The notes beneath the pieces are model-generated. The model was given only the letters and a program-made list of their open reading frames with translations. It made no database searches and was not told the origin of the DNA. From contig OZ116712.1 of the NCBI GenBank assembly GCA_964199315.1, positions 21,328,001 through 21,392,000 on the forward strand: a stretch of 64,000 nucleotides of DNA, written 5' to 3'. Shown in pieces: positions 46,805-51,577 of the stretch. A program made the position numbers and the translations under genes. This stretch comes from Orbicella franksi. Lineage: Eukaryota. The first letter of the stretch is position 1; each line of letters begins with the position of its first letter.

Positions 46805-49715
46805 TCACTTTTGTTTACTAGAACTTTGTTCTGCATTAATAACTGGCTTGGCCTTGACAAGCTTTGCTTCCACAACTGCTGCTACAACTCCACTAAACAT
46901 CTCATAAACTCCTTGACCAGTGCTTGCTGATGTTTCATAATACCTAAAAAAATGAAAACAACAGACTGACAATTCAGCTAATGTGCAGATTTACTTATTT
47001 TTAATTGTATGTGGTTTATTAAAACCTCTTGTGTTTAATCAAGTTTGATGTGACAATGAAGTCATATAAGTAAATATATGAAAGATCATATAGTTGAACT
47101 GCAGACAAAGATATGAAGACATGATTGATGATCACAACTATATACACAACTTAAACGGCTGAGAAATCAAAGCCTGAAAACAAAAATAGAGGCTTGAACA
47201 GGATTTGAACCCATGATCTCTGCGATATTGGTGTACAAACCTTAAATCACGTGCCTTAGCCCATCTCTGTCCATCTTTACTGCTCACAACTCTTTTGGAG
47301 GACAAATCAGTCTAGAGCAACGGAAAATATAACACAATGATTTGAAAATTATGAGGGTGGAAAAATGTTGTGGTGTTGACACCAGAGATTCCACTCTCTA
47401 AGCTGCAGTGTCAGAGCCAAGTCAAAAGAACATAGTCCATTTCTAAATTTTCTAAAGAGTTAGTGTAGGCAGTCACTTGGTCCTCGTCTCCAAAGATAAC
47501 AAAACTGACACAAACTGTTCTCTAATACAGACACTTGGCTCTACAGTTTGCTCATTGTCTTTGTTAAAATGAGGCTTGATCAATCACAATGGTTCTTTAG
47601 TTTGCTGTGTGACGACAACTGAATGCAAATACGATCAGAAAGACTAAAACAATTAATGTTATCAATATGTTGTTTTTTTTATAAAGACGAAATGGATGAT
47701 TCTCACCTTATTAGCCACCACAGCCATTACAGCTTGTTTCCCACCATTGCTGGTGAACTCTTGTAACCAGTAGTCCAGGGAGTCAAATGACAACTTGTTT
47801 GTGACATCAAATACCAGAATACAAGCCTGAGATAGAAAGTGCCACAATGATTAATGTTAGCACAAATTCATCTGATGTCTCAACCAGGGTTCAGAGCTAC
47901 TCATACATCTTTTGGAAATGAGAGATTACAGATAATGCTGAAGTCTGCATAACACTCCAACCTGCGTCTGTCCATATAGTTCCACTCTTATTTCATCATA
48001 ATCTGTGTGACCACCAAAATCCCAGAAGTTGATCCTATCTGAAAAAAGTGTAACATTAAATTACTTATCAGTCATACTATCTCTGATACAAATTTCTTTT
48101 CTTCTAGGAATAACATAAAAATGTCTGAAGGAATCAAAGTTGAAGGATTTTTAGAAGTTTAATTGAATCCTAATAATTCTTACTCTTAAAAACATTTGAC
48201 TGAATAATATTTATATTAACGTTAAAAGCCGACATTTCGACATCATCATGACACCAATCTCAAGGCAAAGTGAATAAATAACGCAAAGATTTGATTTATA
48301 TACAGTCTCTACGAATTAGGATTATAACAAAGGATCACAAGTTCTTCAAGTGAATACCTTTGTGCGAACTGAGTCCGTTTGCACTTAAACCATCCCTAAA
48401 TGTGCAAATGGACTCGATTCGCGTAAAGGTATTCACTTGAAGAACTTGTGATCCTTAGTTATTATGCTAATTCTTAAAGACTGTATATGAATCAAATCTT
48501 TGCATTATTTATTCACTTTGCCTTGAGAATGGTGTCACAATGACGCCGAAACGTCGGCTTTTAATGTTACTATTCACTTGCTTATGTTTTAAGAAATCGT
48601 AATTGATTAAACATTTATATTAGTAACTTCAAAAAAGATATGGCACATTTGTACAGTTGCACACACAATATGGCTTAGTTTGACAATTTATAACAGTTAT
48701 ACTTACAGTCAGTGCCATTAATTTTGTGTAACTTGAAACCTGAAAGCAGTAAACACTAACATTTACTACAAGTAATGATAGTGATGAACAGATCTGATGT
48801 ATTATCAACCAACATGCTGACACAAGAAGGGTTGGGCACCATTTTGCAGTCCCAATGCAAGAGGAGGGGGTCTAACAGCAGAAGAGGAGGGGTTCAAGAA
48901 TAAAAGAGATGTGAAGGACTCCTGGCCTTAGGGTATGAAATTGTCAATGTAAGTAATGTTTTTGTTTCTCTGGTATTTTATAGAATGCATGAGTTGTACT
49001 CAGGCACTCAAGGAAACCAAAAGACCCAAACTCAAACTACCTGAAACAGAATTTAAGAATTGCAAAGTTTAGTCTGACAAAGAGCAGGTCACTGCTCATA
49101 AAGTTTAAACTGCTGACCAACAGACATAACACCACACAGTTACCCTGTTCAGATATGTTCAGCTCAGCTTTAGAGCAAGTTCTCACAATGCTTTCAAAAA
49201 ATGTCTGGAACAAGTTTGCAAGCCTACTGGTTGCAACTGGTGTCACCGTCTGCAGTCTGCAGTTGCTGCACACTAACAAAACTGAACCTACCATAATCAA
49301 CTCCTGTTGTAGGGTGATAGCTCTTTGAAAACTGTAAGAGAAGAAAACAGTACTACAGCTGTAATTACAATACACAGTCACCTGTAGGCAGATCAGATCT
49401 AAAAAGAAAAACACTGTGAAACTTACTTTTTTCTCACAAAAGTTTTTAACGAGACAGGTCTTTCCCACACCATCATTTCCAATTCCAACAACCTAAAGGG
49501 AAAGTTAAACACATTTTCTCAAAAATGTCTGAACTCATAGCAGAGGATTATGAAGAACTAGTGGCCCTTTGTGCTAAAAATAAGCTTGACTGGTTTCAAC
49601 AGCACCCTTATTTGGAAGTAAAACTGGCGCTATTTTACAGCTTTACCTTTATCCAGAACAAAGACCCAGCAATCTCTTGAACAGACTTGGTCAAATGTCC
49701 AGGTTTTCTGTCCAT
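46805..49715 (-). CDS. DNAJC27-like: RJL-family (DNAJC27/Rbj-like) Ras-superfamily small GTPase lacking the J-domain, 204 aa; exons 49715-49647, 49492-49427, 49331-49292, 48739-48707, 48038-47962, 47826-47707, 47311-47241, 46943-46805
   Basis: G1 GNDGVGKT followed by CLVKNFCEKKF, G2 TTGVDYG, G3 DFGGH (His in place of catalytic Gln, an RJL hallmark), G4 NKTD, G5 ETSAS. Eight exons sum to 615 nt. No CAAX motif; stop follows the G domain. Confidence 0.85.
47080..47237 (-). mobile_element. tRNA-derived SINE fragment (5'-truncated)
   Basis: Minus strand: ATCGCAGAGATCATGGGTTCAAATCCTGTTCAAGCC (B-box GGTTCAAATCC), then body ending GATCTTTCATAT. Confidence 0.65.
48218..48568. mobile_element. 351-bp palindrome (167-bp arms, ~17-nt loop), probable inverted pair of Penelope-like element pLTR fragments
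   Basis: 48218-48384 is the reverse complement of 48402-48568, with scattered (often CpG-type) mismatches. Both outer ends carry a hammerhead-like motif. Confidence 0.75.
48520..48558 (+). ncRNA. Minimal type I hammerhead ribozyme motif (U3-A8 variant)
   Basis: GCC-UUGAGAA-U-GGUGUCA-CAA-UGACGCC-GAAA-C-GUC-GGC: stem I GCC/GGC, 7-bp stem II, GAAA, loopless palindromic stem III (ACGU), GUC cleavage triplet with scissile bond after 48555. Confidence 0.7.
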
Positions 49716-49823
49716 CGCCACATCATAATCTCTTCAAGTTTGGTTGTCAACAAACTGGTTACTCTGTGCATTTGTAACCACGCTTGATTGATCGCCTGGC
49801 TACCAAGCCTTCCAAAGTTCAAA

Positions 49824-51577
49824 ATGGCGGAGTTTGCGGCTCATCTGAACCAAGGGACTACAAATGCCAACCCTACAATATTCGAGATAGTCGCCGAGGA
49901 ATCTATGGCATCAGTTTTTAGACCGGCAGTTTCTTATGGGTTAAAAGTGCTAGCAAGTTCCAATCCTGGCAGATGGGGCTGGATTTGGCGTTTCGGAGAC
50001 GAACTTCACCTCTGTTTAGATTACATCGTTCAGAATTACTACTTGAAGAACTTTGGAGGTTCAATATCTGAACATTTTTACGGTCTTAAAAGAGTTAACA
50101 GGTTTAACACAGAAAAACACGAGGGAGAGCTTTCAAGTTATCAGAAGTATCTATCGGTGATCATGCTTGTCGGAGTACCATATGCAAAGCTGAAACTTGA
50201 TCAACTGTTTGAAAGAGTGAAAGAAGAGTATGTTAGCGGATATTTGTCCTCTAACCCGTCACGAAAGAATTCTTATTTTCTTCACCTTAAGAGGACATTT
50301 ATTTACGTTTACCCATTCTTACATTTCTCCTGGGAAGCGGTCTTCTTATGTTATCACTTACTGTACATATTCAGATTCTCTGAGGTCCACTCTCCTCTCC
50401 TACATGCTATTGGAGTCTCGCTCCAGAGACTCACGAGACAAGACATTCTTGCGCACAACGTGCAGAACAGTCTGCCCAACATACTGAGTGCAAAGACTGT
50501 GGCCGAAAGGATTTTGGCAATTCCAAGCTCAGTGACGCAGTTATTAGCATCAGTTTTTGCCAATGGTCTTCCAGTTGTGGTGTTCTTTCTCAAATTCGTA
50601 GATTGGTGGTATTCAAGTGAGAATAAAGGTGCAGTGCAGTCTGTGATTCAGTTACCAGTTCCTTCTCCACCACCTCAACCTAAGGTAACAATACCCATAA
50701 TTCCAGAGGAAGTGCTGCATAGAGGAGGGGGGGGGGGGGGGGGAGGTGGGGCACTTCAATGAAACAAACCTCTTATGTGTCATTGCACCATTGATTTAAT
50801 TTGCTTTGAAAGCACCATCCAAGATTTGAGGCACAACATTAGACATTGACCAGGGTTTTCATTAAATTTCAAGTCACATATCCTTGTTCTTTGCACCCTT
50901 AACACAACCTTGTTGTTTTGTGGATAAATTACCAATTCCCTTTACAAGACAAGCCTGCAGGGAATCATGATAGTTGTATTCATTATCTTGGACTGGATGT
51001 TTGTTTTGATGAATACAACTCCCATGATTCCCTGTAGGCATGTCTCACAGAGGGAATGGGTATTGACAACAGGCAATTTCAACCAATTTGACAATTTGCA
51101 TATTTCTATACATAAGCAACTTAACTGGCTTAAAACTTTTTAATCTAAATCTTGGACGTCTGTCTTTTGATTAGTTGAAAATACAGTGAACTCTCTAGTA
51201 CGAAGGGATTTCGTACTACTCGTCATGGCTGCAAATGTTTGGTGAAGTGATGGTTTTTTAGGCAATGCCAAGAAAATCACGAGTTTTGATGAAGTATTGT
51301 TGTCACTGGTTAGTGTCTTGTGGTTAAACTGAAAAGAAACTACTTTGTTCTCTTCCCACAGCCTGCCCAACATGGAACTCAACTTCCTCCTCACCCAGCA
51401 CAATGTCCTCTGTGTAAGAAGGTCCGCACTAATCCTGCAGCACTGTCATCATCTGGTTATGTGTTCTGTTACCCTTGTATCTACAAATACTTGAACCAAC
51501 ATGGTTGCTGCCCAGTCACACATTTGCCAAGTGCAACAAAACAACTTGTTAGACTTTATGTTGATGATCGAAACTAG
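49824..51577 (+). CDS. PEX12: Peroxisome assembly protein 12 (RING peroxin), 358 aa; exons 49824-50684 and 51362-51577
   Basis: MAEFAAHL..PTIFEIVAEE, GGSISEHFYGLKRV, VVFFLKFVDWWYSSE, and the degenerate RING CPLCKKVRTNPAALSSSGYVFCYPCIYKYLNQHGCCPVT. Phase-0 intron AAG|GTAACA...CACAG|CCT. Confidence 0.95.
50931..51062. repeat. Imperfect ~130-bp hairpin (MITE-like) in the PEX12 intron
   Basis: CCAATTCCCTTT..GCCTGCAGGGAATCATGATAGTTGTATTCAT vs ATGAATACAACTCCCATGATTCCCTGTAGGC..AGGGAATGGG, ~25-nt loop. Confidence 0.7.

Follow-up and report, generated by a model that had tools for sequence, protein, structure and literature searches.

A probable Penelope-like element remnant with minimal U3-A8 hammerhead ribozymes in a GTPase intron of the coral Orbicella franksi

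Introduction

The hammerhead ribozymes closest to those considered here are the minimal hammerheads (min-HHRs) of Penelope-like elements (PLEs), and it is with these that a 64,000-nt stretch of the stony coral Orbicella franksi invites comparison (assembly GCA_964199315.1, contig OZ116712.1, positions 21,328,001 to 21,392,000 of the forward strand; this whole stretch is called the window below and supplies the coordinates). Within it, a long hairpin carrying two hammerhead motifs occupies an intron of a Ras-family GTPase gene. It is probable, at about nine chances in ten by our own estimate, that this hairpin goes back to a single old insertion event, in which a canonical endonuclease-positive (EN+) PLE left its 3' end in that intron.

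The min-HHRs of PLEs have neither helix III nor loop 3; their helix II is 7-8 bp long and their helix I short, one additional nucleotide stands between A9 and 10.1, the G10.1-C11.1 pair is conserved, and 15.2-16.2 is palindromic (PMC4209133). They occur as dual motifs on opposite strands, 100-700 bp apart, and solitary copies are frequent; single motifs gave no cleavage and dimers weak cleavage; a U3-A8 core variant is present in the Cercyon PLEs of Schistosoma mansoni, with about 1,300 matches (PMC4209133). In the literature, min-HHRs are described as able to act only as two copies paired through the palindrome, with a proposed role in processing tandem PLE transcripts. The C3-G8 pair of the hammerhead core is established (PMC3884650). 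Corals are rich in such motifs: a census of Acropora millepora that required CUGANGA counted > 6,000 type I hammerheads, mostly of the minimal PLE type (PMC7229834).

The element in the window is a new family of the kind described in 2014 (Cervera & de la Pena 2014). Shared features are the type I fold without a helix III loop, the palindromic 15.2-16.2, the extra nucleotide after A9, the G10.1-C11.1 pair, a helix II of 6-8 bp, a short open helix I and U3-A8 covariation, together with placement on the PLE sense strand, frequent solitary copies and opposite-strand pairs 100-700 bp apart. Differences lie in the host, which here is a stony coral (with the motif also in a sea anemone), in a helix I of just 2-4 bp, and in the reach of U3-A8, which is found in every sampled family of the clade and not as one variant. 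In the library searched, the 2014 paper (PMC4209133) is the sole one to mention U3-A8.

For PLEs, Craig et al. 2021 (PMC8557442) give as hallmarks 5' truncation, an inverted 5'-truncated partner, a one-sided tail of 30-40 bp and a hammerhead close to the 3' end. The present family matches them in its heavy 5' truncation, in an inverted 5'-truncated copy at the 5' side, in a 30-40-bp tail at one end, in a hammerhead near the 3' end, in microsatellite preference, and in the reverse transcriptase (RT) and C-terminal GIY-YIG domain of its homologues. The window differs in holding only a 394-bp stump, without reverse-transcriptase sequence and without a direct pseudo-long terminal repeat (pLTR).

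Two further comparisons help to place the locus. Animal non-LTR (long terminal repeat) retrozymes, such as the 220-240-bp repeats of Acropora millepora, are likewise coral hammerhead retroelements that rely on PLE machinery (PMC7229834), and are themselves non-coding head-to-tail tandem repeats with canonical CUGANGA hammerheads, loop-loop contacts and circular RNAs; the window, by contrast, shows no tandem array, and its family has an ORF and a minimal ribozyme with a U3-A8 core. The Rfam models Hammerhead_1, Hammerhead_3, HH9, HH10 and Hammerhead_II describe the same catalytic fold in principle, but they expect C3-G8 and a closed helix III, and none matches over 48100-48700 even at E <= 10.

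Anatomy of the hairpin and its intact hammerhead

A repeat search delimits an inverted repeat with arms at 48213-48384 and 48402-48573, each 172 nt long, 88% complementary and spaced by 17 nt; the 351-bp hairpin (48218-48568) from which this work started falls within it. The features of the insertion, including scores from a covariance model (R1) discussed below, are as follows.

48209-48218: left copy of the target-site duplication, ATTTATATTA, its last 6 bases overlapping the family homology of the left element copy (microhomology)
48613-48622: right copy of the target-site duplication, the same 10-mer ATTTATATTA
48213-48384 (-): left arm, an inverted 5'-truncated PLE copy with 12 codons of the open reading frame (ORF) and its stop, 3' untranslated region (UTR) and decayed hammerhead; no tail
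48346-48384 (-): what remains of the ORF C-terminus in the left copy, with 12 codons (48349-48384) and the stop (48346-48348), by comparison with the ORF end of family locus L026
48228-48266 (-, the strand of the GTPase pre-mRNA): decayed hammerhead, R1 28.9 bits, E 7.4e-6, 5 of 39 positions changed against the family majority
48383-48612 (+): right arm and tail, a forward 5'-truncated PLE copy with 18 codons, stop, 3' UTR, intact hammerhead and tail
48384-48440 (+): last 18 codons of the PLE RT/GIY-YIG ORF, LKPSLNVQMDSIRVKVFT (codons at 48384-48437, TGA at 48438-48440)
48520-48558 (+): intact hammerhead with U3-A8 core, from a descriptor scan, R1 (48.7 bits, E 1.1e-11) and the minimum-free-energy fold
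48574-48612 (+): 39-bp terminal tail, at the right end only, delimited by the family 3'-end classes

The motif at 48520-48558 (+) is, as originally predicted, a complete minimal type I hammerhead. Stem I is open and consists of 3 bp (GCC/GGC), with loop 1 missing. The core reads UUGAGAA and not CUGANGA, so that the proposed replacement of C3 and G8 by U3 and A8 is borne out, and the catalytic boxes UUGAGAA, GAAA and GUC together span 48523-48555. Between A9 and G10.1 stands an unpaired U48530, a feature absent from the earlier account. Stem II has 7 bp (48531-48537 with 48541-48547), including one U.G pair and beginning with G10.1-C11.1 (G48531-C48547), and is closed by a CAA loop. On the 3' side GAAA is followed by the loopless palindrome ACGU (48551-48554) and by C17 at 48555, which places the predicted cleavage between C48555 and G48556.

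A descriptor made of these features, with either C3-G8 or U3-A8 allowed in the core, was run on both strands of the 64 kb. It matched 48520-48558 (+) alone, and had no match in 300 first-order Markov-simulated windows, a chance level of < about 0.01 expected matches per window. The local minimum-free-energy fold reproduces stems I and II (-13.7 kcal/mol, z = -2.2). From the palindromic ACGU a 4-bp trans helix between two copies can be written; cofolding two copies yielded a stem II domain swap and no double hammerhead, although nearest-neighbour folding cannot judge a tertiary fold.

At the tip of the hairpin, 48351-48434 (+) draws sub-threshold Rfam matches to microRNA precursors (among them mir-277, with 25.7 bits where the gathering score is 43), which follow from the hairpin shape of the inverted repeat.

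Two truncated copies, head to head

The original prediction had invoked inverted pLTRs, but the arms are truncated ORF-plus-3'-UTR copies and not pLTRs in the strict sense. The left copy aligns to all family loci, stops 18 nt past the cleavage site, and has a translation that terminates in VQTDSVRTKVFT before its stop codon. On the right, LKPSLNVQMDSIRVKVFT matches the C-terminus of a 266-aa ORF piece at L026:6995-7792, and family loci align from 48383 as far as 48610-48616. The right-hand copy extends to about 48612, which is 39 bp past the palindrome end at 48573; its limits at 48383 and about 48612 follow from the graded 5' ends of the family and from the two classes of 3' ends described below (+73, and +110 to +117). 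The 5' ends of the left copy (48384) and the right copy (48383) overlap by 2 nt and lie 20 nt apart in element coordinates, an offset that accounts for the 17-nt loop of the hairpin.

The 10-bp repeat ATTTATATTA abuts both outer ends of this composite (shuffle P = 0.015). We infer a single insertion event behind both copies: one insertion would have left two 5'-truncated 3'-end copies head to head, framed by the 10-bp target-site duplication and with a tail on one side. The hairpin would then be a by-product of the head-to-head architecture, each copy having brought along the 3'-UTR ribozyme of the element itself, a minimal type I hammerhead without a helix III loop.

Family copies and the link to Penelope

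Sister copies were sought by scanning metagenome contigs with a 23-nt seed taken from just upstream of the motif, where the two arms agree (the seed match starts at 48500). The scan returned 25 coral metagenome loci, about 17 of them distinct. One, L018, is orthologous to the locus in the window, with 98.9% identity across 2.66 kb that take in both arms. Counted from the seed match, 5' ends across the family are graded (-10, -20, -24, -40, -54, -75, -117 in the window, -188, -397 and about -450/-490), and 3' ends form two classes, a tail-less one at about +73, to which the left arm belongs, and a tailed one at about +110 to +117. An element unit that begins at the shared boundary 48383 is ruled out by this graded 5' truncation across loci.

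Head-to-head pairs recur among these loci (L001, L019 and L022) and among the loci of related families treated below (L032, L034 and L036), and five of these repeat the layout of the window, with an inverted partner and a one-sided tail (L001, L022, L032, L034 and L036). Copies at L001, L014 and L017 sit in microsatellites of the ATT/ATTATC type, which agrees with the published preference of PLEs for such targets. Two pairs merit separate mention. At L032 the hammerheads lie on opposite strands about 1.5 kb apart, at 1306-1342 (-) and 2824-2860 (+), and the same trinucleotide microsatellite is present on both sides of the inverted pair (1033-1101 and 3026-3115), which suggests insertion into a microsatellite. 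L034 (1-2466) is a young case of the inverted architecture, in which two head-to-head copies of the PLE ORF share 99.8% identity across 515 bp.

The longer copies tie the family to a coding element. They translate, with some frameshifts and stops, into an ORF tail bearing a GIY-YIG signature (L015: Pfam GIY-YIG E = 1.2e-3). In the related locus L034, one of the two ORF copies is a 637-aa gene with DUF8422, RVT_1, HTH_animal and GIY-YIG. A homologue search gathered 553 proteins, Porites and Acropora models among them. Through one of these (P0005) it led to locus L026, where an intact 266-aa C-terminus ending in SIRAKVFT (Pfam GIY-YIG E = 5e-4) runs into the family 3' UTR. Homologues of this piece, at 57-90% identity, contain RVT_1 and HTH_animal with or without GIY-YIG: P0122, which is 90% identical, has the first two, and P0155, P0173 and P0186 have all three.

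Taken together, the ORF of the long copies and these RT/GIY-YIG homologues indicate that the family is the 3' end of a canonical EN+ PLE, with RT and GIY-YIG seen at the level of the family only. The PLE neighbours originally proposed are present, in that longer sister copies enter a GIY-YIG ORF and RT appears in homologues. Elsewhere in the window, a BLAST search with the arm gave no further copy, tandem or otherwise, and two seed scans of viral contigs had no match. The original label of a PLE- or retrozyme-like remnant therefore divides: its PLE half stands on the GIY-YIG ORF, the RT homologues and the conserved hammerhead, while its retrozyme half falls with the coding capacity of the family and the want of a tandem array. 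A retrozyme as such is ruled out by the lack of tandem or direct copies in the window and by the family ORF.

A U3-A8 hammerhead in related PLE families

Related loci were picked by protein similarity alone, at 52-70% identity to the 266-aa piece (L027, L029/L030, L031, L028, L032, L035, L033, L034 and L036); L028 is from the sea anemone Actinostola. A U3-A8 hammerhead lies 60-160 nt past the stop codon in every related family sampled, on the sense strand of the PLE; in the window and at L026, 79-82 nt separate its start from the stop codon of the RT/GIY-YIG ORF. The pattern can be written UUGANAA-U-[stem II]-GAAACGUC, set in UTR sequence that is dissimilar on inspection.

Any of the four bases can stand at N7. 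Stem I takes the forms GCC/GGC, CUC/GAG, CAC/GUG and GC/GC, and stem II the forms GGUGUCA/UGACGCC, GGAGUCA/UGACUCC, GACCUC/GAGGUC and GACCGA/UCGGUC; both stems vary with compensatory changes across families. Invariant in an 11-sequence alignment of related families are U3, A8, the bulged U, G10.1-C11.1, GAAA and C15.2-G16.2. Two further copies, at L036, carry G16.2>A, and U16.1 is altered in two examined copies, one in L032 and the inverted copy in L036.

The covariance model R1 was built from seven related-family sequences, with the family of the window left out. In the window it finds exactly two significant sites, the motif at 48520-48558 (+) (48.7 bits, E 1.1e-11) and the mirror motif at 48228-48266 (-) (28.9 bits, E 7.4e-6); a search that allows U3-A8 does, then, recover the intact motif by descriptor and model alike, and the model adds the mirror copy. 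Over the 28 R1 matches from all loci, in an alignment fitted to the structure of the model, 87% of cells are paired against 77% in shuffles and 26-62% with slid partners, 6 of 10 pairs are altered on both sides, and the covariation score lies above that of every one of 500 shuffles. Because of that fitting, the raw sequences are the cleaner evidence of covariation.

These comparisons suggest that the U3-A8 core is the normal state of a cnidarian PLE clade and not a local mutation. On balance we lean toward the broader statement that a PLE clade of Hexacorallia (stony corals and at least one sea anemone) swapped the near-universal C3-G8 tertiary pair for U3-A8 in each of the sampled families, with free variation in both stems and at position 7.

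Locus L027 also has a weak hammerhead-like site at 586-626 (21.6 bits), on the strand of the 3'-UTR hammerhead and about 3.3 kb upstream of it; its core, UUGAUGA, would have U3.G8. A direct repeat was looked for in this locus and none was seen, so no pLTR is shown there.

Weighing the insertion

Several observations count against reading the hairpin as an EN+ PLE insertion. The target-site duplication is only moderately significant (P = 0.015), and its flanks are AT-rich. The Pfam GIY-YIG scores, at 19.5-20.7 bits, fall just under the gathering score of 22.6. A full-length element of the window's own family was not recovered, the longest copy being about 970 bp (L026), and the reverse-transcriptase link consequently rests on homologues of up to 90% identity. 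Rfam reports no hammerhead over the window at gathering score, nor over 48100-48700 (601 bases) at E <= 10. The fitted pair-count alignment and the weak cleavage of published min-HHR dimers belong on the same side.

Part of this would be expected if the hairpin were instead a miniature inverted-repeat transposable element (MITE), a foldback DNA transposon or a plain palindrome with a chance hammerhead-like motif, since a hairpin with terminal inverted repeats, AT-rich surroundings and silence in Rfam all suit such an origin. Yet family copies are mostly single-armed, are truncated to graded extents at the 5' side but share their 3' end, and continue into a PLE ORF; the motif had 0 matches in 300 simulated windows (< about 0.01 expected per window), and an independent covariance model detects it at E 1e-11. 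A MITE in particular is ruled out by copies of graded length, mostly single-armed, in place of uniform ones bounded by terminal inverted repeats, and we regard this group of origins as barely credible. As for Rfam, it was foreseen that a CUGANGA search would miss the U3-A8 motif: Rfam models are indeed silent, and the published coral census required CUGANGA. The EN+ PLE insertion is the reading carried forward.

The decayed mirror copy

The mirror hammerhead at 48228-48266 (-) shows every change that had been reported for it, A9>U, C15.2>U and a stem II weakened by two C>U changes that turn G-C into G.U, and one loop change besides. Its fold is no better than that of shuffled sequences (z = -0.4). 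Differences were counted against a family majority computed without the window; this majority-rule reference is a 235-nt 3' stump that serves only for the count. By that measure there are 12 differences over the 172 positions of the right arm and 13 over those of the left arm. Within the 39-nt motif, the left copy has five changes, namely A9>U plus four C>U of which three affect CpGs, and the right copy one, a loop change that is a CpG transition. There are 5 CpGs in the motif, and CpG observed/expected in the window is 0.51.

Why the copy in the sense of the gene should be the dead one admits two answers. Selection may have killed the gene-sense ribozyme to keep the GTPase pre-mRNA uncut and spared the antisense copy; in keeping with this, the sole intact copy is antisense to the GTPase gene, and the gene-sense copy is changed at a conserved core base, A9>U. 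But the two arms are equally diverged, the excess of changes in the sense hammerhead falls short of significance (Fisher tests: p = 0.17 within the arm and 0.20 between arms, with a further one at 0.30), CpG transitions account for three of its five changes in a motif that has 5 CpGs, and the motif is intact in only about 5 of 19 family copies wherever they are located. Moreover, a lone min-HHR has no detectable cleavage in vitro (PMC4209133), and here it is buried in a hairpin of -242 kcal/mol, so there would be little to select against. Selection of this kind is very unlikely.

Neutral CpG decay is sufficient, and selection is not needed, given equal arm divergence, the share of CpG transitions and an asymmetry that is not significant. 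Of the two causes originally offered for the inactivation, then, decay is enough and selection is not called for. After insertion both copies would have decayed neutrally, by about 7% each; CpG decay yields such strand asymmetry by chance, and in a CpG-rich motif the gene-sense copy would thus have taken five changes, A9>U included, and the antisense copy one, in its loop.

Expected behavior at the locus

The expectation of a long double-stranded RNA (dsRNA) in the intron is supported by folding: on the pre-mRNA strand the hairpin of about 170 bp is predicted at -242 kcal/mol (z = -32), and on the + strand at -235 kcal/mol (z about -30), in both cases far more stable than the ribozyme fold of -12 to -14 kcal/mol. 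By analogy with the described min-HHRs, the ribozymes of this family may work as dimers. At this locus, activity of either one seems unlikely, since each strand has a single sense copy, locked in the roughly 170-bp hairpin.

The hairpin itself might have been co-opted, its ~170-bp dsRNA feeding small-RNA pathways or A-to-I editing or modulating GTPase splicing, a role compatible with transposon origin. The stability predicted for the pre-mRNA strand and the presence of the structure in the 98.9%-identical orthologous locus would fit. The arms, however, diverge at the neutral family rate, the microRNA-family matches are far under their gathering scores and merely reflect hairpin shape, and L018 is too similar to the window to reveal constraint, so we consider co-option unlikely.

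Host gene and neighbors

The insertion lies between the switch-I and WDFGG exons of the GTPase gene, which is on the minus strand; Ras-family exons flank the hairpin on that strand, and its predicted intronic position is sound.

about 49427-49492 (-): GTPase P-loop exon, Ras/Roc
about 49.27-49.33 kb (-): GTPase switch I exon, Ras-family motif
about 47.96-48.04 kb (-): GTPase WDFGG exon, Ras-family motif
47662-47847 (-): GTPase G4 exon, Ras, E = 7e-7, with matches to PDB Rab structures and DNAJC27
about 46.85-46.97 kb (-): GTPase G5 exon, Ras-family motif

The same intron has a short G-rich tandem repeat at 48859-48908 (period 23, 2.2 copies), unrelated to the element. Upstream of the GTPase, a PEX12-like gene (49788-50762 and 51320-51577, +) combines a Pex2_Pex12 N-terminal region (E = 6e-35) with a downstream C3HC4 RING exon. 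It and the GTPase gene are arranged head to head, so a common promoter region of about 300 bp at 49.5-49.8 kb is probable. Farther on, 53398-54471 (-) is an intronless ORF of 357 aa in which a TM2 domain (Pfam E = 1e-10) is N-terminal and a DnaJ domain (1e-22) C-terminal, an architecture that resembles DNAJC22.

Implications

The locus itself is of little import, being a dead transposon stump in an intron. Its interest lies in the clade to which it leads. If the swap to U3-A8 is clade-wide, the ribozymes of this clade would be invisible to Rfam and to coral censuses based on CUGANGA, and counts of coral hammerheads would therefore be underestimates; a small covariance model like R1 would permit a proper census of U3-A8 hammerheads. 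If true, it would also mean that nature has run a clade-wide compensatory-mutation experiment on the 3-8 pair, one that supplies natural variants with which to test the importance of 3-8 pairing versus base identity for catalysis.

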